64,000 nt of DNA, from positions 124,001-188,000 of the IMG/VR virus record IMGVR_UViG_3300032562_000004; one strand, given 5' to 3'. A program made the position numbers and the translations under genes. The notes beneath the pieces are model-generated. The model was not told the origin of the DNA. It searched no databases and saw nothing but the letters and a program-made list of their open reading frames with translations. The stretch's first letter is position 1; every line of letters starts with the position of its first letter. Shown here piece after piece: positions 19,535 to 49,310 of this stretch.

Positions 19535-19599
19535 ATCTCCTTTTGTTTACGGTCGTTACTCTGACCTTGGACCCAAGTACTTCTGACTTTGTGATAGGG

Positions 19600-19935
19600 T
19601 TTGTGGAACGATTGTTTCTGTTGCCAAGTACAATCGCTGGAAAACTCCGACAGGTGTTTAGGCTGCCAGTGCGTAACTTTCATCGTTAGCGTTTAATTTA
19701 ATTTGCTTCTTCGACCGAGTGTCCTCAATCCTAACGGCTTTCGCTTTGCCGATTCTCCATTGTTCTAATTATTGCCATGTCGAAACCGGTCGCCCACATC
19801 AAAAACATATTAGCTGGTAATACTCACTCCATTAAAAACCTGCCGTTGTGACTGGTTCACTAATATGCTTATGGTGTAGGCGGGGAGAATCGAACTCCCG
19901 TCCACAACAACTTTCAAACAACTTCAACGAATGTG
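19600..19935 (-). ncRNA. ssrA: Circularly permuted (two-piece) tmRNA, tag ANDESYALAA (outer ends approximate)
   Basis: T-arm + CGCCTACACCA (ends 19872), a 74-nt intervening segment, then GTGGGCGACCGGTTTCGAC (G1=19797); G3.U70; tag frame 19690-19658. Confidence 0.92.
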
Positions 19936-20052
19936 TATCAATAATGGTCCTAATCTATAACTAGTATAAACATCGCCATTATTAAATCTAACTTGGCCCC
20001 AATGAAAAATTCCACCACGGTACCAATGTGTCTTATATACTCTAATCTTCAT
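19924..20052 (-). CDS. 42 aa hypothetical protein
   Basis: Own translation MKIRVYKTHWYRGGIFHWGQ...; co-oriented, fills the gap. Confidence 0.35.
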   Translation of the reverse strand: MKIRVYKTHWYRGGIFHWGQVRFNNGDVYTSYRLGPLLIHIR

Positions 20053-38959: not shown

Positions 38960-39035
38960 TGGTGGAAATGGAGGGATTCGAACCCCCGACCTTGTCCGTA
39001 TGAAGGACCTGCTCTACCAACTAAGCTACATTTCC
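38960..39035 (-). tRNA. tRNA anticodon CAT (elongator Met or Ile2)
   Basis: Cloverleaf, loop TTCATAC, CCA. Confidence 0.85.
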
Positions 39036-39522
39036 GTAAATGAAAAAAGGCGTAGAGTATTATCCCCAAACCTCTTTATATTTTTCTAAAGCCTTTTTTC
39101 TTGCTAACACAAGTCTAATTTTCATTTCATCCGAAATGTCTTGTACATCAGCTGTTTGGTCGACTAGCTCTGGACGACGATATCCAATTTGAAACTCTGG
39201 AGTTTCATCGTAATAGTCATCATCGTTATCATTTAAAAATACACGAGCTAACGGTCGCTTAGGTAGATGTAGTTTTGCCTTCGTTCTTGTGATGATAGCA
39301 CGGACCCGACCGTTTGCTGTCGCAGTTGGGGCAACCCATTCTAAGCGATTGGAATCCAAAGACTGTGCCAACTCGGCTGAGCTTTTCTGGCTTATTATTA
39401 CTAAAGTCGCGAGTGTTAATACTTGTAACAGGGTGGGTATACATGAGTTTCTCCTAAGCATACTATATTAACGCTTAAGAGTTACACTAAGTTGACAATA
39501 ATATTGCCAAAATTATATCTTT

Positions 39523-39597
39523 TGGTCCGGCGTACAGGAATCGAACCCATATTCATCGGGTAGAAGCCGATTGTACTATCCATTGTACTAACGCCAG
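39523..39597 (-). tRNA. tRNA-Arg(TCT)
   Basis: ATCGG-CTTCTAC-CCGAT, CCA. Confidence 0.9.
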
Positions 39598-39600
39598 CTT

Positions 39601-39718
39601 ATATTGAAACACACTAGAAGAACCGTGACGAGCGGATTCATTTACCTTCCTCCAACAAGCGGAAGCCCATACCGGTCAGATATGGTGCCACTACTAAGGA
39701 TTAATGTGCTTCAATATA
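39601..39718 (-). ncRNA. Structured spacer RNA closed by a long inverted repeat
   Basis: ATATTGAAGCACATT / AGTGTGTTTCAATAT enclosing two hairpins. Confidence 0.5.
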
Positions 39719-39721
39719 AAC

Positions 39722-39797
39722 TGGTCCAGGCGCAGAGATTTGAACTCTGAAAGTTCGGGTAAAAGCCGAATATGATAGCCAGTTTCATCACACCTGG
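39722..39797 (-). tRNA. tRNA-Lys(TTT)
   Basis: TTCGG-CTTTTAC-CCGAA, CCA. Confidence 0.85.
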
Positions 39798-39906
39798 ATT
39801 GTTTTTCTTGCTTGCGTAGAGCTTTATTGCTCTTGCGGTGCGAGCCCGCTTTCCGTTTATTTGCTAGTACAGCAAATATATTTCTTGCTTTCATTTTACT
39901 TCTCCT

Positions 39907-40326
39907 TTAAAAATCTGTTAGTGGAACTAGTTCCTCTAAATTTACAACATCGGTCCAATCTTCAATATGGCCCGAGTAGTAACCGTTGTGTTCGTTGCGT
40001 ACTTCAAAATCAATATATCCACGGTTAGTGCGAATAGTAAAGAAGCCATCTTCGACTACTTCTGCGTATTCGTCATCTGTCTCAACATTGACCCACTCTT
40101 TTTCTTCTACAGCAGTAACTAACGCACCACGTAGCAAATCAAAAGTGTTACCTTCTCCAATTACATCTCTACCTTGAAAGTGATTAATGTAAACAGTATT
40201 ACAACAATCGCCACATACATAAAATCCTAATACTTCTCCTTCGATGGTACGAAATGCAACTCTATCATGGTCTTCGTTTAGGAAAATACCATTAATGCGT
40301 TTTCCAACTAGCTTGTTTAAAACCAT
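39907..40326 (-). CDS. Hypothetical protein inside the tRNA array
   Basis: GDCC and RNEHNGYYSG motifs; AGGAG RBS. Confidence 0.6.
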   Translation of the reverse strand: MVLNKLVGKRINGIFLNEDHDRVAFRTIEGEVLGFYVCGDCCNTVYINHFQGRDVIGEGNTFDLLRGALVTAVEEKEWVNVETDDEYAEVVEDGFFTIRTNRGYIDFEVRNEHNGYYSGHIEDWTDVVNLEELVPLTDF

Positions 40327-40358
40327 GCCATTCTCCTTTTAAAATTTAAAACATATTA

Positions 40359-40433
40359 GGGGTGACCTGTGGAATTCGAATCCACCCTATCGGAATCACA
40401 ATCCGAGGTGCTAACCGCTAACACTAAGGCCAC
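40359..40433 (-). tRNA. tRNA-His(GTG)
   Basis: TCGGA-TTGTGAT-TCCGA; C73; 3' end CCT rather than CCA. Confidence 0.88.
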
Positions 40434-40447
40434 ACCTAATATGTCTA

Positions 40448-40523
40448 TGGTGCACCCTCTTGGTTACGCTCCAAGCCATCCAGCTCTTAGAGCTGGCGCT
40501 TCCACTAGGTTAGCTTAGGGTGC
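40448..40523 (-). tRNA. Atypical class I tRNA, anticodon TAA (loop TCTAAGA)
   Basis: Perfect acceptor stem + CCA; C at position 33; T-loop AGCGTAA; short variable loop. Confidence 0.65.
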
Positions 40524-40739
40524 TCTACCTCTTGATATCCAACCATCATAGTTGTCGACATCTTTTACTTCGTCTACTCCTAGTTTACTCGTGCAGTTAG
40601 GATTTTCACTACACATCGTAACAAAGGTATGTCCAAGGCTACGATGGAATTGAGACGCAGATAATGCCATACTTAAATCATCAAACACTTCTGCGTGTGG
40701 TTTATTATCCACAGTATAATAAACTTTAAACATATTCAC
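40515..40739 (-). CDS. Hypothetical protein; stop codon inside the next tRNA
   Basis: FVTMCSENPNCTSKLGVD motif. Confidence 0.55.
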   Translation of the reverse strand: MNMFKVYYTVDNKPHAEVFDDLSMALSASQFHRSLGHTFVTMCSENPNCTSKLGVDEVKDVDNYDGWISRGRAP

Positions 40740-40749
40740 TTTCTAAAAT

Positions 40750-40823
40750 TGGTACCTCGTGATGGTGTCGAACCACCGAGACCCACTTGTAAGGAGGGCA
40801 GTATACCGTTTACTTAACGAGGC
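40750..40823 (-). tRNA. tRNA-Val(TAC)
   Basis: Loop CTTACAA, CCA. Confidence 0.88.
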
Positions 40824-40826
40824 ATT

Positions 40827-40900
40827 TGGTAGAGGTACTAAGATTTGAACTTAGACTAATGCCTTCAAAGGGCACGGTGCTGCCGTTACACTATACCTCA
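40827..40900 (-). tRNA. tRNA-Gln(TTG)
   Basis: GTGCC-CTTTGAA-GGCAT, CCA. Confidence 0.9.
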
Positions 40901-40906
40901 ACAGTT

Positions 40907-40980
40907 TGGTTGCGGGTTCTGGAATCGCACCAGAGACTAGGGCTTATGAGACCCTCGAGATACTCCTTCTCCAACCCGCG
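40907..40980 (-). tRNA. tRNA-fMet(CAT)
   Basis: C1:A72 mismatch, loop CTCATAA, T-loop TGCGATT. Confidence 0.85.
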
Positions 40981-40986
40981 ATAGAT

Positions 40987-41061
40987 TGGTGGACCGTGGG
41001 AGAGTCGAACTCCCTACTCCTGCGTGCAAGGCAGGTGTGTTCCCAATTATACCAACAGCCC
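40987..41061 (-). tRNA. tRNA-Ala(TGC)
   Basis: G3.U70, loop CTTGCAC. Confidence 0.92.
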
Positions 41062-41493
41062 TAAATTCTTTTGCCATTCATTAATAAATGGCAATACTTC
41101 GTGTTTCCATTTGCTATGAACCATCTCGTGATGATTTGGGCATAGCGGTATTAAATTACTGGGCTTGTTATTTTTTCTATTCTCATCAATATGATGGATA
41201 GCAACAATCTTGTCAAACCCGCAAATAATACACTTGTGTTCGTGATGCTGTTTTGCTATAGTCGCATAATGTGTGGCATTGTCTTTCCACCAAGAGCTTC
41301 TGTTATTAGCACAACTTCTACTACAAAATCTAGCTGTTTCAAATTGTTTGGTATTTTGTCTACCAGTCCAAACAAATTCTTTATTACAGCATCCGCAAAT
41401 TTTAGTATGATCTTTTACTGGACCATACTTTCTATTTACTTTTGCTATTTGACCAGCTTTATAAGATTCTGTATAATATTTTCCGTTATTCAT
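41047..41493 (-). CDS. HNH endonuclease
   Basis: CIICG...IHHIDENRKNNKPSNLIPLCPNHH. Confidence 0.85.
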   Translation of the reverse strand: MNNGKYYTESYKAGQIAKVNRKYGPVKDHTKICGCCNKEFVWTGRQNTKQFETARFCSRSCANNRSSWWKDNATHYATIAKQHHEHKCIICGFDKIVAIHHIDENRKNNKPSNLIPLCPNHHEMVHSKWKHEVLPFINEWQKNLGLLV

Positions 41494-41508
41494 AATTTTT
41501 AATTACTT

Positions 41509-41582
41509 TGGAGCGGGTAGAGAGAATCGAACTCTCAACTAAACCTTGGCAAGGTCTCGGGTTACCATTACACCATACCCGC
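41509..41582 (-). tRNA. tRNA-Gly(GCC)
   Basis: Loop TTGCCAA, TCCA end. Confidence 0.9.
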
Positions 41583-41586
41583 AAAT

Positions 41587-42102
41587 TTATAAAATACTTT
41601 CTAATAACTTCCTAACATCTAATGTAATAGGTTGTAAGTTATTTACTACTGTAGAATCTTTACATATCCAATTAGCAACAGGCAGTCCTGGTTTTAAATT
41701 AAACTGCCCGCTTTTTGTTTCAAGATTCCTATTACATTCGTCCCACGATAATTGCGATATAGCAAACTTATGCGGGGCTGACTGAATACATAACAAATAA
41801 TCAAATGATTGATTAAATTTAGACTTATTAGTATTTTGAAGTGAAACTCGTCCTGTAATTGTATTCTTCGGTGAAAACATATCAGCTACTGATTTAAATT
41901 CATATTTTGTATTAGTTTCTAAATCAATGCTATCATATCCTTCCTGGTCAACATACTTTAATCTTCCGTCTGTTGCTTTCTCTAATGCTAATGCTAGAAC
42001 TTCGCCTTTGAGAAATCTATAAGATGGCTTATTAAGTTGCTTGCCAAGTTTAACTAAACAATCAACTACGGGTTGATAATCTACATCCTTCAAAAAACTC
42101 AT
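41587..42102 (-). CDS. Putative PD-(D/E)xK endonuclease between two tRNA-Gly genes
   Basis: GYDSIDLETNTKYEFKS (D...ExK). Confidence 0.5.
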   Translation of the reverse strand: MSFLKDVDYQPVVDCLVKLGKQLNKPSYRFLKGEVLALALEKATDGRLKYVDQEGYDSIDLETNTKYEFKSVADMFSPKNTITGRVSLQNTNKSKFNQSFDYLLCIQSAPHKFAISQLSWDECNRNLETKSGQFNLKPGLPVANWICKDSTVVNNLQPITLDVRKLLESIL

Positions 42103-42116
42103 AAGTTCCTTTAATT

Positions 42117-42190
42117 TGGAGCGGGATAAGAGAATCGAACTCTTGACCGAAGATTGGAAATCTGCTGTTTTACCATTAAACTAATCCCGC
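42117..42190 (-). tRNA. tRNA-Gly(TCC)
   Basis: Loop TTTCCAA, TCCA end. Confidence 0.9.
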
Positions 42191-42192
42191 AT

Positions 42193-42375
42193 TGGTGTCG
42201 TAACGGCAGGGCCCTTCAGGATGAGTTACGACGTTACTACATTGAGGCATTGCACCGTAGCTTACGCTACCCCCATCAACTGCCTCAAATTTTGTGTAGG
42301 GCTTCCACCTACTCCCACCTCGCTTTAAAGTCTGCGTGTCCAAGACTTAGTTCTATTGCTAGAACTGAAAATGTT
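42193..42375 (-). ncRNA. Multi-hairpin RNA ending in an 8-bp stem + ACCA; not a cloverleaf
   Basis: Five hairpins; GTCGTAAC/GTTACGAC-ACCA. Confidence 0.55.
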
Positions 42376-42389
42376 ACTTTCTAATACTT

Positions 42390-42415
42390 TGGTACCTCGG
42401 GCCGGAATCGAACCG
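42390..42415 (-). pseudogene. Orphan 3' fragment (T-arm + acceptor strand) of a tRNA, probably Leu
   Basis: CGGTTCGATTCCGGCCCGAGGTACCA with no 5' half. Confidence 0.75.
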
Positions 42416-42427
42416 TTCGCGTTATAT

Positions 42428-42513
42428 TGGTGCCCGGAGCCGGACTCGAACCGGCATGCCTTTTAAAGCGGAAGATTTTAAGTCTTCTATGTATACCATT
42501 TCATCACCCGGGC
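42428..42513 (-). tRNA. tRNA-Leu(TAA)
   Basis: GAAGA-CTTAAAA-TCTTC, long variable arm. Confidence 0.92.
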
Positions 42514-42968
42514 GTTTGATCTATCTTGCGCCAACCTTTAGGTTTACCACCTTTTCTGTTAGCGGCAATTTTTGCCTTATGTTCTTCCGACTTTGGTTTT
42601 CCTTTATTTCCAGATCCATTAGTATTACCTAACATTACTTTGCTATTCATAGCAGATGCTTTTTCTAAACCATATTTTTCAACACGGCGTTCAAAAGGAT
42701 TTTTATGTGTCCCAAACTCTTTACCATCAATGATGATATTATCGTAATCAGTGCCCCAATACAAATGTTTTGGATTACTACATTTACTATTATTACAAGC
42801 ATGACACAACAGTATGCGCCCGCTTGGAATAGTTGTATCTAAATATTGTGCTAATACACCTTTATGATTAGTAGAGTTACCGCCGCGTTCACAACAAGGC
42901 TCGGATAAGTCTAAGTGAGCCCTGCGTTCTTCGCGAGATTTTTTAATAAATTCTTCTACTATAATCAT
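42504..42968 (-). CDS. HNH-type endonuclease with NUMOD3-like tail (start at MIIVEE)
   Basis: LCHACNNSKCSNPKHLYWGT..DN; GKPKSEEHKAKIA. Confidence 0.78.
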   Translation of the reverse strand: MIIVEEFIKKSREERRAHLDLSEPCCERGGNSTNHKGVLAQYLDTTIPSGRILLCHACNNSKCSNPKHLYWGTDYDNIIIDGKEFGTHKNPFERRVEKYGLEKASAMNSKVMLGNTNGSGNKGKPKSEEHKAKIAANRKGGKPKGWRKIDQTPG

Positions 42969-43009
42969 AACAGTATTATATAGTAATAATTTATTACTGT
43001 CAAATATTT

Positions 43010-43094
43010 TGGTGGGCAAGGAGAGACTCGAACTCTCACGCCTTGCGGCACTGGCTTCTAAGACCAGCATGGCTACCAATTACATCACTCACCC
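43010..43094 (-). tRNA. tRNA-Leu(TAG)
   Basis: CTGGT-CTTAGAA-GCCAG, long variable arm. Confidence 0.92.
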
Positions 43095-43559
43095 ATTTAC
43101 TACTTTTAAACCTTTTAATCTATCTGCGGCATAACTAGCCGCAAACGCTTGTGGCTTAACTAGTGGCTCTACATTACATACGCCACGGATATAACCAATA
43201 GCTTGACTTACAACATTAGAACTAGCATGAATTTCGTTAGGATTAATATCTAAATGTACTTCTACAGCACGACCTTCTAATACTTCTGCTAATTTTAAAT
43301 ACAATTCACTAACCTTAAACACTTCAGTCATTAATCTAGTATTAGGTTTATCACAACGGTCATAATCTCGTTCTCTAGTCACTTCACCAAATAACTTACA
43401 ACCGTGATTACCGTCAATATGTACAACAATAGCGGCTGTATAGTCAGCATACCATTCTTTGCCACGCTTAATTCGTTCAGAGTCCACACCAATATAAATC
43501 TTAGTGTCTGGACCTTGAGCATCTATAAACTTTTTGATTTGTGGTATGTTAAACTTCAT
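43089..43559 (-). CDS. RNase H-like YkuK/DUF458 family protein (start at MKFNIP)
   Basis: IYIGVDS...RLMTEV...EVHLDIN...KPQAFAASYAAD. Confidence 0.78.
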   Translation of the reverse strand: MKFNIPQIKKFIDAQGPDTKIYIGVDSERIKRGKEWYADYTAAIVVHIDGNHGCKLFGEVTRERDYDRCDKPNTRLMTEVFKVSELYLKLAEVLEGRAVEVHLDINPNEIHASSNVVSQAIGYIRGVCNVEPLVKPQAFAASYAADRLKGLKVVNG

Positions 43560-43580
43560 TATTCTCTTTCTTAAGTTATT

Positions 43581-43654
43581 TGGCGTCCCGGCAGGGATTC
43601 GAACCCCGACCAACAGTTTTGGAGACTGCGATGCTACCGTTACACTACCAAGAC
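43581..43654 (-). tRNA. tRNA-Trp(CCA)
   Basis: Loop CTCCAAA. Confidence 0.92.
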
Positions 43655-43674
43655 GTTGTACTACTATTTAATGT

Positions 43675-43751
43675 TGGTGCCTCAACCTAGACTCGAACTA
43701 GGGACCCTTGCGTTATCAACACAATGCTCTAACCAACTGAGCTATTGAGGC
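43675..43751 (-). tRNA. tRNA-Ile(GAT)
   Basis: Loop TTGATAA. Confidence 0.92.
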
Positions 43752-43752
43752 A

Positions 43753-43829
43753 TGGTGGGTCTTGAGAGACTCGAACTCCCAACCGCTAGTTTCGAAGACT
43801 AGAACTCTAATCCATTGAGCTAAAGACCC
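43753..43829 (-). tRNA. tRNA-Arg(TCG)
   Basis: CTAGT-CTTCGAA-ACTAG. Confidence 0.92.
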
Positions 43830-43834
43830 ATGTT

Positions 43835-43929
43835 TGGTAGTAGATATAGGTTATGATCCTATCCGTTGCAGCCCATCTGACCACTCTCCCAGGTTTATAA
43901 AACCCGGCCGCACACCAGTGCTATCTACC
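43835..43929 (-). tRNA. Atypical 95-nt tRNA, anticodon TAT (reads Ile AUA)
   Basis: 7-bp acceptor + ACCA; 4-nt D-loop; loop TTTATAA; long variable arm; T-loop ATCATAA. Confidence 0.7.
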
Positions 43930-43939
43930 ATATTGTTAT

Positions 43940-44026
43940 TGGCGGAAAGTATTGGAGTCGAACCAATCCACCCATTGCTGAATGACAGATTAGCAATCTG
44001 TTGCCTTGCCGCTCGGCCAACTTTCC
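43940..44026 (-). tRNA. tRNA-Ser(GCT)
   Basis: Loop TTGCTAA, G73, long variable arm. Confidence 0.92.
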
Positions 44027-44035
44027 TTAATTGTT

Positions 44036-44130
44036 TGGCGGAAGACAGAGGAGTCGAACCCCACCCGGCTCTTCACCAGGACCTGGTTTTCAAGGCCAGT
44101 CGCAGGACCATCCCCGCTGCATTATCTTCC
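44036..44130 (-). tRNA. tRNA-Ser(TGA) with enlarged D-arm
   Basis: Loop CTTGAAA, G73, long variable arm. Confidence 0.85.
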
Positions 44131-44136
44131 ATATTG

Positions 44137-44212
44137 TGGCTCCCCGAGCTGGGCTCGAACCAGCGACACCGTGATTAACAGTCACGTACTCTACCAACTG
44201 AGCTATCAGGGA
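44137..44212 (-). tRNA. tRNA-Asn(GTT)
   Basis: Loop CTGTTAA. Confidence 0.93.
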
Positions 44213-44220
44213 ATTGTTTT

Positions 44221-44298
44221 TGGTCTGTGAGGTAGGATTCGAACCTACAGCCTCCTGACTCCAGATCAGGCCGTCTACCAGATTGACATTACACACAG
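44221..44298 (-). tRNA. tRNA-Pro(TGG), non-canonical C33
   Basis: CCTGA-TCTGGAG-TCAGG; C1-G72, A73. Confidence 0.8.
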
Positions 44299-44306
44299 AT
44301 TGTTAC

Positions 44307-44381
44307 TGGTGCCCCAGAATGGAATCGAACCACCGAACCCGGCTTACAAGACCGGACCTTTACCACTAAGGATACAAGGGC
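44307..44381 (-). tRNA. tRNA-Thr(TGT)
   Basis: CCGGT-CTTGTAA-GCCGG. Confidence 0.9.
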
Positions 44382-44764
44382 TATTTTCTGTCTCTACCAT
44401 TTCCTTTATTTTTAGCCTTATATGTAGGCGTCTGACTATGGCAGTTTGGGCATATTGCCCTTAAATTTTCTTCTTTGTTATTTTTATAATTCCCGTCGAT
44501 ATGATCTAATTCTAGATATAGCGGAAGACCATTATGTTCTTCGATACCACAAATAAGACATTTATTATTTTGTTTTGCCCTTATATAACGATGTATATAC
44601 ATACTAGTTTGATGTTTGCCTCGAAGGCCATCTTCTAAACCAGACTTCCACCGTTCTATGTAACTTTGATGCATTCCTTCTAAGTAATGCTTGCCACAAT
44701 AGATTCTTTTTTCTTTATGTGTAAATACCGTAGAACATATTTTACAGCTATATTTTTGTAACAT
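44381..44764 (-). CDS. HNH endonuclease
   Basis: CLICG...LELDHIDGNYKNNKEENLRAICPNCHSQTPTY. Confidence 0.88.
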   Translation of the reverse strand: MLQKYSCKICSTVFTHKEKRIYCGKHYLEGMHQSYIERWKSGLEDGLRGKHQTSMYIHRYIRAKQNNKCLICGIEEHNGLPLYLELDHIDGNYKNNKEENLRAICPNCHSQTPTYKAKNKGNGRDRK

Positions 44765-44780
44765 ATAATCTTTCTTTAAC

Positions 44781-44857
44781 TGGCACTCTGTAGGGGTGAC
44801 GATCCCCTCTTACCAACGTGAAAGGCTGGGGTCCTAACCAACATAGACGAACAGAGT
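44781..44857 (-). tRNA. tRNA-Glu(TTC)
   Basis: Loop CTTTCAC; T-loop ATCGTCA. Confidence 0.85.
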
Positions 44858-44863
44858 ATAACT

Positions 44864-44941
44864 TGGCGTCCTCACCGGGTGTCGATCCCGGTCCTACACC
44901 TTGAAAGGGTGTTGATCTAGCCAATCGTAATCTATGAGGAC
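44864..44941 (-). tRNA. tRNA-Glu(TTC), second copy
   Basis: ACACC-CTTTCAA-GGTGT; T-loop ATCGACA. Confidence 0.85.
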
Positions 44942-44947
44942 ATAACT

Positions 44948-45022
44948 TGGCGACTCCAGGGAGTAACGATCTCCCTCTTCCTCTTAGACAGAGAGGTGTG
45001 CGTCCATGAACACTTTGGAGCC
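44948..45022 (-). tRNA. tRNA-Asp(GTC)
   Basis: CCTCT-CTGTCTA-AGAGG; T-loop ATCGTTA. Confidence 0.85.
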
Positions 45023-45027
45023 TTTGT

Positions 45028-45101
45028 TGGTTGCGGGCTAGGGTAACGCTCCCTATTCCATCCTGGCTTATGAGACCGGAGTGTGGCTATCACAACCCGC
45101 A
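45028..45101 (-). tRNA. Initiator-like tRNA-Met(CAT) with short D-arm
   Basis: GCGGG acceptor, loop CTCATAA, T-loop AGCGTTA. Confidence 0.7.
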
Positions 45102-45109
45102 ATAGTTGT

Positions 45110-45187
45110 TGGAGGAACGGGTCGGATTCGAACCGACGACTTTACAGTTTTGCAGACTGTTGCTTTGGGCCACTCAGCCACCGTTCC
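45110..45187 (-). tRNA. tRNA-Cys(GCA)
   Basis: Loop CTGCAAA, U73. Confidence 0.92.
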
Positions 45188-45196
45188 GTTATTGTT

Positions 45197-45281
45197 TGGT
45201 GGGTGGTCATGGAGTCGAACCAAGTATGCCAGAGGCGTCTGATTTACAGTCAGGTGCGGTCGCCAGTGCCGCTCACCACCC
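45197..45281 (-). tRNA. tRNA-Tyr(GTA)
   Basis: Loop CTGTAAA, long variable arm. Confidence 0.92.
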
Positions 45282-45285
45282 ATAT

Positions 45286-45505
45286 AACGCTCTCTTTAGA
45301 AAGCGTGTAATAAAGCATACTAAGGCAATCATTTTTGCGCTGTGGAAAAGCGCCATGTCTTCGATCCGCGATGCCATTGACGGACCAGGTCTTTTAGTAT
45401 GCTTTATTACGCTGTAGTTTTTTGCTCCACAAAAGGAGTTTCATCGTACAGGCCGCCCGTTTACTAGATGTTTTAAGTGCCTAGCGTGGACCTCGTTCCC
45501 ACATA
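45286..45505 (-). ncRNA. Structured leader of the tRNA array with a perfect 16-bp helix
   Basis: TAATAAAGCATACTAA / TTAGTATGCTTTATTA plus flanking hairpins. Confidence 0.5.
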
Positions 45506-45509
45506 ACAC

Positions 45510-45538
45510 ACTATACTACCTTACTGTTTATTTGTCAA
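45510..45538 (-). promoter_or_regulatory. Sigma70-type promoter proximal to the tRNA array
   Basis: TTGACA-17 nt-TATAGT. Confidence 0.75.
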
Positions 45539-45720
45539 TCTTCTATTTGAAAATAAACAGCTTCTTTACGCTGCGAAGCAAGTAATACCTTTGCTCGCTC
45601 GATCTTATTCTGAATCAACTTCTGCTTTTGCTCATCACTGAGTGAATAACTATAAGCCTGTTCCACAATACGATCATTTAATTTACTATAATCTATTGTC
45701 ATCTTTCTTTCCTTTTAAAA

Positions 45721-45752
45721 ACAAAAAACCCGGAGTGTTTAGTTCCGGGTCC
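45721..45752 (-). terminator. Intrinsic terminator (candidate attenuator)
   Basis: GGACCCGGA-ACTAAACAC-TCCGGGTTT then TTTGT. Confidence 0.85.
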
Positions 45753-45779
45753 TTAAAGTTTGTGATATTAAAATATTAC

Positions 45780-45941
45780 TTAATCATCATATCCTTCTTG
45801 GACCCTACTATAATCTTTCCCTGCCTCAATCATATTAAAGCCACTATTATGAATTGTTGAGCGTAAAGAGGCTACCGGGCTCCAGCAGAGTGCTGAACCT
45901 TGTGCTATTTGATACGTTACGGACAATCTTGTATTTTTCAT
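45780..45941 (-). CDS. 53 aa candidate leader peptide containing all 20 amino acids
   Basis: Own translation MKNTRLSVTYQIAQGSALCWSPVASLRSTIHNSGFNMIEAGKDYSRVQEGYDD; ATG lies 9 nt after the -10 box. Confidence 0.6.
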   Translation of the reverse strand: MKNTRLSVTYQIAQGSALCWSPVASLRSTIHNSGFNMIEAGKDYSRVQEGYDD

Positions 45942-45950
45942 AATATGTTT

Positions 45951-45979
45951 ATTATAATGCTTAATTAATTCTTTGTCAA
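45951..45979 (-). promoter_or_regulatory. Consensus sigma70 promoter of the leader peptide
   Basis: TTGACA-17 nt-TATAAT. Confidence 0.85.
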
Positions 45980-46067
45980 CCTTCTTTTTTACTTCTCTGA
46001 ACTTTTATTTACCTAATGTTGCAATTATACGCATATTTCCATTGAAAGTCAACCACTTTTGGTAAAA

Positions 46068-46360: not shown

Positions 46361-46975
46361 TTAATTGATTAGATCTTCTATAGATTTTTCGAACCCCACT
46401 GTAATTACTAATCTCGGTCCTGGGCTCAAATGTACGGTATGCACATAGTCTGTGCGTACAAATGCGCTAGGAGTTAGTAAATTTGATTCTGCAGCCGTAG
46501 CAGGGCCTAAATATTCCATTTTTTCTGCTACTGTTGTTCCTGGCATAGTTAGCCCAGTAAAAGGTAATCCAGTTCGAGTACTTACTTGAGTAATCGAGTA
46601 TAGTCTTTTATCAGTATGATGAAAATCGGTCCACCAATGCATAGGATCTTCTGGATTACCTTTTATTAATATATTAAATCTACTTTTTAAAATTTTATGG
46701 TTTTCGTTATCCACATGGGGTCTTCCATAACCTTGATTTTCTAAATTAGCTAAATGTGCGGTTATGATTAGATTGGATGTATCACAATTATATTGCGACA
46801 AATAATTTAATAATTCTTGTCCAGCACTTACTTCACGCCATTCGTGCTGTAACTTTCTTTGATCCCAATCTAAATTATGATAAAAATTTTCATTAAAATG
46901 ATTTTTATATCGATTAAGTATCCAATCTTTAGCTTCCTGCGAAAAATCAAAATCTGTTTTATGGAATAGTAACAT
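46361..46975 (-). CDS. 2OG-Fe(II) oxygenase-like protein, tandem paralogue 2
   Basis: RPHVD (HxD), SAFVRTDYVHTV, PRLVITV. Confidence 0.6.
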   Translation of the reverse strand: MLLFHKTDFDFSQEAKDWILNRYKNHFNENFYHNLDWDQRKLQHEWREVSAGQELLNYLSQYNCDTSNLIITAHLANLENQGYGRPHVDNENHKILKSRFNILIKGNPEDPMHWWTDFHHTDKRLYSITQVSTRTGLPFTGLTMPGTTVAEKMEYLGPATAAESNLLTPSAFVRTDYVHTVHLSPGPRLVITVGFEKSIEDLIN

Positions 46976-47606
46976 TGATTAACTCTTCTATACTTTTATC
47001 GAAAGGCACAGTAATTACCAATCTTGGTCCAGGACTTAATTTTATAGTATGAATATAATCTGTGCGTACAAATGCGCTAGGAGTTAGTAAATTTGATGCT
47101 GTATCTGTAGCAGGACCTAGATACTCCATTTTTTCTTCATTAGTGTGTCCTGGCATAGATAAACTACTAAATTCTTGATTAGTACGTGTATTTAAAACAT
47201 TACTATAGTACAAGCGTTTATCTGTATGGTGAAAGTTAGTCCACCAAAGCATAGGATCTTCTGGATTACCAAGCACTATTATATTAAATTTTGAAGTTAC
47301 TGTTATTTTACCTTTAGCAGGTCCGTATAATTGTTCGGCGTCAACGTGCGGGCGACTATAATATGGTATTGTTAAATTTGCCAGATGAGCAGTTATGATC
47401 AGATTAGATGTATCGCAATTATATTGAGAAAGGTAAGACAATAATTCTTCTCCAGCAATAGATGCTCGCCATTCATGTTGTAGTTGATTTTGAATCCAAT
47501 CATAATTATGATAGAAATTTAATTTGAAGTGATCTTTATATCGGTTAAGTAACCAATCTTTAGCTTCTTGTGAGAAATCAAAATTTGTTTTATGATATAA
47601 CAGCAT
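46959..47606 (-). CDS. 2OG-Fe(II) oxygenase-like protein, tandem paralogue 1
   Basis: RPHVD, SAFVRTDYIHTI; shares long identical blocks with its neighbour. Confidence 0.6.
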   Translation of the reverse strand: MLLYHKTNFDFSQEAKDWLLNRYKDHFKLNFYHNYDWIQNQLQHEWRASIAGEELLSYLSQYNCDTSNLIITAHLANLTIPYYSRPHVDAEQLYGPAKGKITVTSKFNIIVLGNPEDPMLWWTNFHHTDKRLYYSNVLNTRTNQEFSSLSMPGHTNEEKMEYLGPATDTASNLLTPSAFVRTDYIHTIKLSPGPRLVITVPFDKSIEELINVTIP

Positions 47607-48616: not shown

Positions 48617-48736
48617 ACTAATAGTTCCTTTATGTTTATACTACTGAACAAATATTTATTGTTTTTTTGCGTTGGCCTGCAAAAATTGCTAGGTTTTGGC
48701 ATATTTTTAAGTTTAATATACGCATATAATGAAGTC

Positions 48737-48764
48737 AAAAGAATAGGGGTCGAAGCCCCTATCT
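48737..48764 (-). terminator. Terminator at the end of the tmRNA coding piece
   Basis: ATAGGGGC-TTCG-ACCCCTAT-TCTTTT. Confidence 0.8.
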
Positions 48765-49097
48765 GTTATTTTCTGTTTCGACGGATAACTCCGCAAAGCA
48801 GTGATTAAACTGCTAATGTTTGGCGTTGTGCTGTACGAGCAGAGAAACGAATTCCCTTACCTGAAACAGTTACTTCGCCTTTAGATGCGTTTGCATTTAA
48901 GTTTTTCGCTTGATTTACAGTCATCGCCTACTGTGTTGCCTCTTTCATTATCTCACCATGTCGAAACCTTGTCATCCCCACTGAAACATACTACAGCTTT
49001 TGGCCTCGCTACCGATAACTCGGTTCGGTAATATGCTTCGGTGGAGATGCCGGGAATCGAACCCGGGTCCACAGCGCCTTCACTACGAAGGAATTAC
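48765..49097 (-). ncRNA. ssrA: Second circularly permuted tmRNA, 29-aa tag ANASKGEVTVSGKGIRFSARTAQRQTLAV (outer ends approximate)
   Basis: GGACCCGGGTTCGATTCCCGGCATCTCCACC, an intervening segment, then GGGGATGACAAGGTTTCGAC (G1=48979); G3.U70; tag frame 48894-48805. Confidence 0.9.
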
Positions 49098-49106
49098 AAC
49101 AATTCT

Positions 49107-49310
49107 TTACAGCGGAAGAATATTTGATGCTTGCTTGCCTTTAGGGCCTGCCACTACATCGAATGTTACCGCTTGATTCTCTTTTAAACTCTTAAAACCA
49201 TTTGTGCTAATTGCGGAAAAATGTGCAAACAATTCCTCACCACCAGCATCGGGGGTAATAAATCCAAACCCTTTTGCATCATTAAACCACTTTACTTTAC
49301 CTGTTGCCAT
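49107..49310 (-). CDS. cspA: Cold-shock protein
   Basis: [18 protein letters not shown]...FAHFSAI...[10 protein letters not shown]. Confidence 0.95.

Follow-up and report, generated by a model that had tools for sequence, protein, structure and literature searches.

We examined a leader locus upstream of a tRNA gene array in the IMG/VR virus record IMGVR_UViG_3300032562_000004, within positions 124,001 to 188,000 of that record. This whole stretch of 64,000 nucleotides (nt) is called the window hereafter, all coordinates are window positions, and all features of the leader locus lie on the minus strand. The locus combines a consensus promoter, a short open reading frame (ORF) that contains every amino acid, and an intrinsic terminator whose 5' arm can alternatively pair with the end of the ORF. 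We found the same layout of short ORF and terminator in a leader family of 99 distinct versions from public viral and metagenome contigs. Based on the comparison of these sequences, we consider it probable (roughly 0.6) that the element is a ribosome-dependent transcription attenuator which gates a phage tRNA operon and whose leader samples every amino acid. A sequence-only reading of the window had already proposed an attenuator, a proposal that would fall if the terminator pairing were not conserved or if homologues kept the peptide and lost its diversity; both points were tested in the relatives, neither was found, and the attenuator interpretation is thus supported.

The leader promoter (TTGACA-17-TATAAT, 45951..45979) scored 12/12 in the sigma-70 scan. 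The ATG of the leader ORF (45941) lies 9 nt past the end of the -10 element and no Shine-Dalgarno sequence precedes it, in agreement with the sequence-only reading; thus, the leader mRNA would be leaderless or nearly so. Another promoter in tandem (TTGACT-17-TATAAT, 46024..46052, 11/12) was found 73 nt 5' of the leader promoter, and its counterpart was seen in relatives too; in transcripts from this tandem promoter the leader ATG would be internal and would lack a Shine-Dalgarno sequence. The leader ORF (45780..45941) consists of 53 codons followed by TAA (45782-45780). All 20 amino acids occur in it, five of them (C, W, H, F and P) a single time, and its 36 codon types include the four Gly codons, five of the Ser codons and AGA, AGG, ATA, CCG and CGC, exactly as had been listed before. 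The counts were right, but the claim that this diversity is high held only in part for the single ORF, which was mildly unusual when compared to length-matched windows from 789 long phage ORFs (P=0.076 for its amino-acid types, P=0.03 for its codon types); for this reason the case rests on the relatives. The leader peptide had no family match in Pfam and PHROGs, and the leader RNA had none in Rfam, either at the gathering threshold or at E up to 10, where Thr_leader (E=3.4) was noise.

The intrinsic terminator (45716..45754; -14.3 kcal/mol, z -3.46) is formed by the stem AAGGACCCGGA/TCCGGGTTTTT, a 9-nt loop and a U-run. Its hairpin (45754..45724) starts with GGACCC (45752-45747), 27 nt past the stop codon, where it had been placed before; the first motif scan did not pick it up because the loop exceeds the 8-nt maximum of that scan. 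The complementarity of GGACCC to GGGTCC in the last codons (45805-45800) was also present as described, but instead of a 6-base-pair (bp) antiterminator we found GGGTCC to be the core of a composite hairpin of 21 pairs that includes the stop codon (TAGT/ACTA, AGGGTCC/GGACCC, AAG/CTT and GATG.TTA/TAA.CATC; 45740..45810; -20.1 kcal/mol, z -4.38). This antiterminator reaches from the final 10 codons across the stop codon and the 3' untranslated region (UTR) into the 5' arm of the terminator. The arm is the strand common to both structures, which exclude each other, and the minimum-energy fold of the whole window leader holds the antiterminator and not the terminator.

Protein and pattern searches recovered 18 distinct close versions of the ORF, with 60-100% identity. 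All 18 are open, have 52-55 codons and differ by in-frame indels, while the ratio of nonsynonymous to synonymous substitution rates (dN/dS) is mostly 0.2-0.6, which together argue that the leader ORF is translated. The possibility that the ORF is really a non-coding RNA was rejected, based on the in-frame indels, the synonymous change and the conserved position of the stop. Within the clade of the window the core ALCWSPVA.LRS is invariant, and the single His is found at position 31, 10 or 6, depending on the member.

RNAalifold was given 15 sequences comprising the final 48 nt of the ORF together with 3' UTR and terminator, and the consensus was the 21-pair antiterminator (TAGT/ACTA, AGGGTYC/GRACCC, AAG/CTT and GATG.TTA/TAA.CATC) and not the terminator; the consensus fold of the full-length leaders was likewise the antiterminator. 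In this close clade 98% of the antiterminator cells were paired, compared to 30-51% when the partner strand was slid, and one of the pairs within the GGGTCC/GGACCC helix that had been noted before appeared as C-G in 5 sequences, U-G in 3 and U-A in 6. The terminator cells were paired in 96%, with two pairs changed on both sides. Covariation inside the close clade is thin, the antiterminator having one doubly changed pair. Two further conserved hairpins were predicted in the ORF body from 14 full-length leaders (45859..45895): CAGCA/UGCUG at the Ala-Leu-Cys codons, and then GAGY..GUAG/CUACGCUC. Those could represent an RNA polymerase pause or a structural element. The consensus fold also paired the A-run of codons 2-3 (GAAAAAY, 45935-45941) with the U-run of the terminator (45717-45724; columns 6-12 with 225-231 of alignment A3), which may be an artefact of A:U richness or a long-range closing helix.

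Identical copies of the leader were found on IMG/VR contigs, the longest of which has 235,812 bp, and a tail-protein family was matched; the source is a large uncultured phage. No relatives were detected among GenBank phages, at the DNA or the protein level, for the region and its neighbours. The 84-amino-acid upstream gene, used as a search anchor, reached close relatives only, and it had no match in Pfam and PHROGs.

The wider family was collected with the pattern of a conserved non-coding RNA that lies directly upstream of the first tRNA and that matched at least 120 viral contigs. A scan of genome contigs with the same pattern gave mostly chance matches, with about 5 true ones in metagenome-bin contigs. 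Additional relatives were reached via a 55-amino-acid ORF located between the terminator and the non-coding RNA; those kept the layout, and their leader peptides look unrelated. We detected a strong terminator in 105 out of 116 distinct upstream regions, located either 25-30 nt or about 200-230 nt 5' of the non-coding RNA, with the 55-amino-acid ORF in between in the latter class. At 103 of the 105 terminator-bearing loci an ORF of 27-67 codons ended 16-30 nt before the terminator, which resulted in 99 unique peptides, and in all 99 versions the terminator is followed by the conserved non-coding RNA and then by the tRNA array. In 91 of the 99 versions the leader ATG has a strong promoter at most 130 nt upstream; 49 versions were leaderless (ATG 5-11 nt past the -10 element), the starts across the family being either leaderless or led by a Shine-Dalgarno sequence. 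Several of the leaders with a 5' UTR (loci L091, L134, L183, L191 and L199) carry a mini-ORF of 2-3 codons (MRQ*, MR* or MN*) at the transcription start, ahead of the leader ORF.

A second promoter between the terminator and the array had been raised as a caveat, and it holds in the window: this bypass promoter (TTGACA-17-TATAGT, 45510..45538, 11/12) overlaps the end of the 55-amino-acid ORF and could transcribe the non-coding RNA and the tRNAs while skipping the attenuator. The caveat does not extend to most of the family, as the interval from the terminator to the non-coding RNA contains a promoter of 10/12 or better in 19 of the 99 versions and none in the other 80. The bypass promoter is therefore a minority state, and in most of the family host polymerase would reach the tRNAs only via the terminator.

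We then compared, for each of the 99 leaders, the pairing of the 5' arm of its own terminator with a segment comprising the last 15 codons and the 3' UTR, using an upstream segment of the same leader as control. The mean duplex energy was -14.5 kcal/mol, compared to -7.6 for the control segment; the mean z against shuffles was -3.1, with p<0.05 in 85% of the leaders, and the pairing site fell at -34..-3 nt relative to the stop codon. Terminator arms vary among lineages and the complementary segment varies along with them: own segments paired with the arm better than foreign segments did (-14.5 vs -10.0). The candidate explanation that any terminator shows such upstream complementarity was rejected by 43 ordinary terminators located after ORFs of at least 100 amino acids on the same contigs, which had a z of -0.04 (Mann-Whitney p 2e-18); z was below -2 in 84% of the leaders and in 5% of the ordinary terminators. 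The pairing is thus conserved and follows sequence change, within the close clade and across the family alike.

The two end states appear to be close in energy. The nascent RNA up to the terminator loop folded as the antiterminator in 6 out of 6 lineages examined, the mean gain was -13.8 kcal/mol when the arm paired with the upstream segment and -15.9 for the terminator hairpin, and the gap between the two end states had a median of 2 kcal/mol. Full-length minimum-energy folds were almost evenly divided, with the antiterminator present in 50 and the terminator in 49. According to these predictions the element would be a balanced switch in which the antiterminator forms first. The string GGGTCCA.GAAGGATA.GATGAT.TAA at the ORF tail is common to the window (45780-45806) and to locus L029 (5880-5910) but stands in a different frame in L029, which argues that the ORF tail is constrained as RNA.

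The second line of evidence concerns composition. All 20 amino acids were present in 54 of the 99 unique leader peptides, a much higher number than expected from real protein windows (3.8), uniform codons (3.0) or the base composition of the leaders (2.6). The number of amino-acid types was 2.2 above the uniform-codon expectation, and the number of codon types was 1.7 above the uniform expectation and 5.9 above real genes. After single linkage at 60% identity, which gave 50 clusters, the median member contained all 20 amino acids in 20 clusters, compared to 1.3 expected (p ~1e-18). The all-20 peptides of different clusters share about 30% identity, and when neutral replacement down to 30% identity was simulated with the leaders' own composition, completeness was kept in about 9%; diversity is thus kept while the peptide diverges, and completeness is under selection.

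The rarest amino acids follow the same pattern. Cys was found in 87% of the leaders (null 48%), exactly once in 77%, and at 30 different offsets from the conserved Trp; Trp was present in 96% (null 56%) and His in 96% (null 69%). The relocation of Cys and His, together with the replacement simulation, weakens the explanation that the diversity was inherited from one ancestor. The family of the 55-amino-acid ORF served as a control of similar size and had a mean of 16.2 types, with all 20 in 1 out of 53; the leaders at the loci of that ORF are shorter than it, yet 30 out of 55 had all 20. Clustered regulatory codon runs were absent from the leaders, whose composition is instead maximally even.

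From these structures we infer that the position of the ribosome decides termination. Host sigma-70 RNA polymerase would initiate at the consensus promoter, leaving the first AUG at most 3 nt from the 5' end, and the 53-codon leader would be translated as the polymerase advances. The 21-pair antiterminator would fold before the 3' arm of the terminator is made. Once the stop codon occupies its A site, a ribosome would cover about -18 to +12 nt, which takes in the 5' strands of two antiterminator helices and the margin of the third; earlier, on the last ten codons, it would melt all three. In this way a ribosome that keeps pace would melt or cover the 5' strand of the antiterminator, free the terminator arm and bring transcription to an end at about 45720. 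A ribosome that is late or stalled in the first 40 codons or so, or that never loaded, would leave the antiterminator in place and allow read-through into the 55-amino-acid ORF, the non-coding RNA and 25 tRNA genes. Owing to the even composition, with rare amino acids once and many codons, a shortage of almost any charged tRNA would delay the ribosome, and more phage tRNA would in turn speed up leader translation and bring termination back, a negative feedback. Read-through would thus depend on leader translation, and host tRNA depletion is the presumed physiological signal; candidate triggers are codon usage that does not fit the host, host defences that cleave tRNAs (PMC10264068, PMC11464382), starvation and shut-off.

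Several observations weigh against this reading of the switch. A clear anti-antiterminator pairing of the 1:2 type was not found in the nascent folds of six lineages and in 14 full-length leaders, and the outcome without translation would therefore rest on folding kinetics. Lineages with short ORFs (32-33 codons) gave weaker statistics, and the relatives share ancestry, so that counts and clusters are not fully independent. Glu in 50 of the 99 leaders and Asp in 32 occurred nowhere but in the tail, the part that supplies the antiterminator strand, and the first Asp of the window leader is codon 43; as a stall in the tail should favour termination, the sensor would be blind to Glu and Asp confined there. 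The N-terminal sensing part is still enriched, with 17.3 types compared to 15.4. A direct feedback in which leader codons match the phage's own tRNAs was not supported (83% compared to 77% genome-wide). The position of Trp is conserved and an x-D-R-T-P-E motif with near-invariant codons was found in 32 of the 99 leaders, which hints at a further constraint on the peptide or the RNA. Finally, with the strong bypass promoter (45538..45510) the switch of the window would only add to a basal level.

Part of this evidence suits an explanation that keeps the same RNA switch and lets it report the general status or coupling of translation (such as host shut-off, toxins that target ribosomes, the phase of infection or how efficiently leaderless mRNAs are initiated) rather than the supply of individual tRNAs, the even composition serving only to stop any one amino acid from dominating. 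Half of the family is leaderless, and leaderless initiation is condition-dependent. The absence of codon runs, the frequent location of Asp and Glu outside the sensing part and the lack of a match between leader codons and the phage tRNA set point in the same direction, as does the mycobacterial whiB7 upstream ORF (uORF), which reacts to many translational stresses (PMC10274678). Such a sensor would gain nothing from including the rarest amino acids; however, the leaders retain Cys, Trp and His, for the most part in a single copy, Cys and His change position, and the number of amino-acid types lies 2.2 above what uniform codon use itself would give. We consider this explanation unlikely.

The element could otherwise simply encode a small protein, or act as a dual-function small RNA, under its own promoter and terminator. 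Its 3' hairpin would then stabilise the mRNA or assist translation termination, and the tRNAs would be fed by constitutive leak-through or by phage-specific promoters. The purifying selection on the peptide, the conserved Trp, the DRTPE motif in one third of the members and the bypass promoter of the window are all compatible with it, and phage-specific promoters would be invisible to a sigma-70 scan. However, the conserved hairpin always uses the 5' arm of the terminator, which a stabilising hairpin does not need, and the distance from stop to terminator is held at 16-30 nt despite an identity of about 30% between lineages. The peptide diverges freely while its completeness stays, L029 keeps the nucleotides of the tail in another frame, and no protein family was matched; this makes such a gene or small RNA quite improbable. 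A nascent-peptide arrest sensor, in which a Trp-containing core would stall the ribosome on a small molecule or factor as in TnaC and so set the switch, fits the Trp present in 96% of the leaders (mostly single, often as YW) and the invariant ALCWSPVA.LRS core of the window's clade, but the surroundings of Trp differ widely among lineages, its codon lies inside a predicted RNA helix in several members, no known arrest motif was recognised in the leader, and amino-acid completeness is left unexplained, all of which makes it very improbable.

The attenuator that samples every amino acid resembles the classical trpL, hisL, pheL, leuL, thrL and ilvL attenuators, which also have a short ORF just past the promoter and then an intrinsic terminator. 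In the trpL/hisL type, too, antiterminator and terminator compete for one strand and the position of the translating ribosome determines the fold, with termination once the ribosome has reached the ORF end and read-through when it has stalled upstream. The differences are that those leaders carry a regulatory codon run, whereas the phage leader has every amino acid with the rare ones once; that the phage leader ORF is longer (27-67 codons) and leaderless in half of the members; that no clear 1:2 anti-antiterminator was found in it; and that the classical systems regulate biosynthetic enzymes, the phage element tRNAs and a non-coding RNA. None of the Rfam models of those leaders matched the phage leader. 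Lacking the codon run and regulating different genes, it is thus not a member of any described leader family.

In the pyrBI operon of E. coli a closely following ribosome prevents the terminator, and UTP is sensed via polymerase pausing. The outcome is set there, as proposed here, by the distance between ribosome and RNA polymerase, but the sign is opposite. The nearest functional analogue is the whiB7 uORF of mycobacteria, in which stalling is believed to cause antitermination and which is activated by depleting many amino acids, tRNAs or tRNA synthetases, the coding sequence setting the starvation that is sensed (PMC10274678). Both have a uORF combined with a terminator and an antiterminator; they have no sequence relationship, and the whiB7 uORF is enriched in alanine and controls a bacterial transcription factor, whereas the phage leader is even over 20 amino acids and its output is a tRNA array. 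Antibiotic-sensing leaders of the vmlR type also redirect folding through a ribosome stalled in a short ORF, so that the terminator is read through (PMC9226507). They share the switch with the phage leader but respond to drug-bound ribosomes at particular peptide contexts, and they have neither compositional completeness nor a link to tRNA genes. T-box riboswitches have a similar purpose, as they read tRNA charging with a terminator and an antiterminator upstream of translation-related genes; unlike the phage element, which would read the whole pool via the ribosome, a T-box binds one uncharged tRNA directly and has no ORF. Neither a T-box nor any other Rfam family matched the leader, even when hits up to E=10 were considered in addition to the gathering threshold.

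Two roles have been proposed for phage tRNA genes, codon compensation and, in more recent work, the replacement of tRNAs that host defences destroy (PMC10264068, PMC11464382). Little has been described of their regulation, and a full-text literature search gave no paper linking phage tRNA arrays with leader peptides or attenuators. If the proposed mechanism is true, this would be the first attenuator that senses the whole decoding capacity and not one end product, and large phages would tune their tRNA supply to need. A bolder reading, which we put forward tentatively and regard as somewhat less probable than its opposite, is that the leaders make up a widespread phage family of 'omnivalent' attenuators, under selection to include each amino acid, with a single copy of the rare ones, so that the charge of the whole tRNA pool would be read through one ribosome and any deficit would induce the tRNA array and the structured RNA, a self-limiting answer to codon mismatch or to tRNA-targeting immunity. 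With its host-type promoter and a length of about 230 nt, the element offers a compact and testable model that makes the purpose of phage tRNAs experimentally approachable via their inducer, and two undescribed conserved elements lie downstream of the switch, the structured RNA and the 55-amino-acid protein.

The 55-amino-acid ORF (45535..45702) has a Shine-Dalgarno sequence and would be the first gene reached, and its product the first protein made, on read-through. Its family (x-KLNDRIVEQA ... KIERA ...) was present in 61 of the 99 leader versions; the protein is probably helical and had no match in Pfam and PHROGs. The conserved structured non-coding RNA (45282..45509, about 230 nt) was found in the window, at L022, L025, L026, L029 and L048, and at about 120 further loci (L084-L203). 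Its 5' part is very conserved and comprises a covarying GGN-AACGAG-NCC hairpin, a hairpin with a CACTWTAAA loop and then AAACGGGCGG. Further on, a perfect stem of 17-20 bp encloses a variable insert, which in some relatives contains a GGTTCGA similar to a T-arm. Rfam had no match to this RNA, whether the gathering threshold or an E limit of 10 was applied.

The tRNA array (38960..45281), presumed to be the regulated unit, contains 25 tRNA genes and interspersed ORFs, including HNH endonucleases, one of which was identified by family matching at 44381..44764. An array of 28 tRNAs with its nucleases had been described from the sequence: the array does lie downstream of the leader, but the 28 genes called by ARAGORN in the window correspond to 26 tRNAs and 2 genes similar to transfer-messenger RNA (tmRNA), with 25 of the tRNAs downstream of the leader, and the nucleases are endonucleases of the HNH homing type. 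ARAGORN also called a tRNA-Ile(tat) at 43835-43929 (minus strand) that is unusually long (95 nt) and has its anticodon at position 31; Rfam listed no tRNA at that position at the gathering score. Upstream of the leader we found two adjacent paralogous ORFs (46361-46975 and 46959-47606, minus strand) of 204 and 215 amino acids, which are clearly similar to each other and had no match in GenBank phages, Pfam and PHROGs. Finally, the two tmRNA-like genes (19567-19966 and 48714-49131, minus strand) are permuted, that is, in two pieces; the second, with its long tag peptide, is matched by the betaproteobacterial tmRNA model too, and relatives also carry a tmRNA-like gene upstream of the leader.

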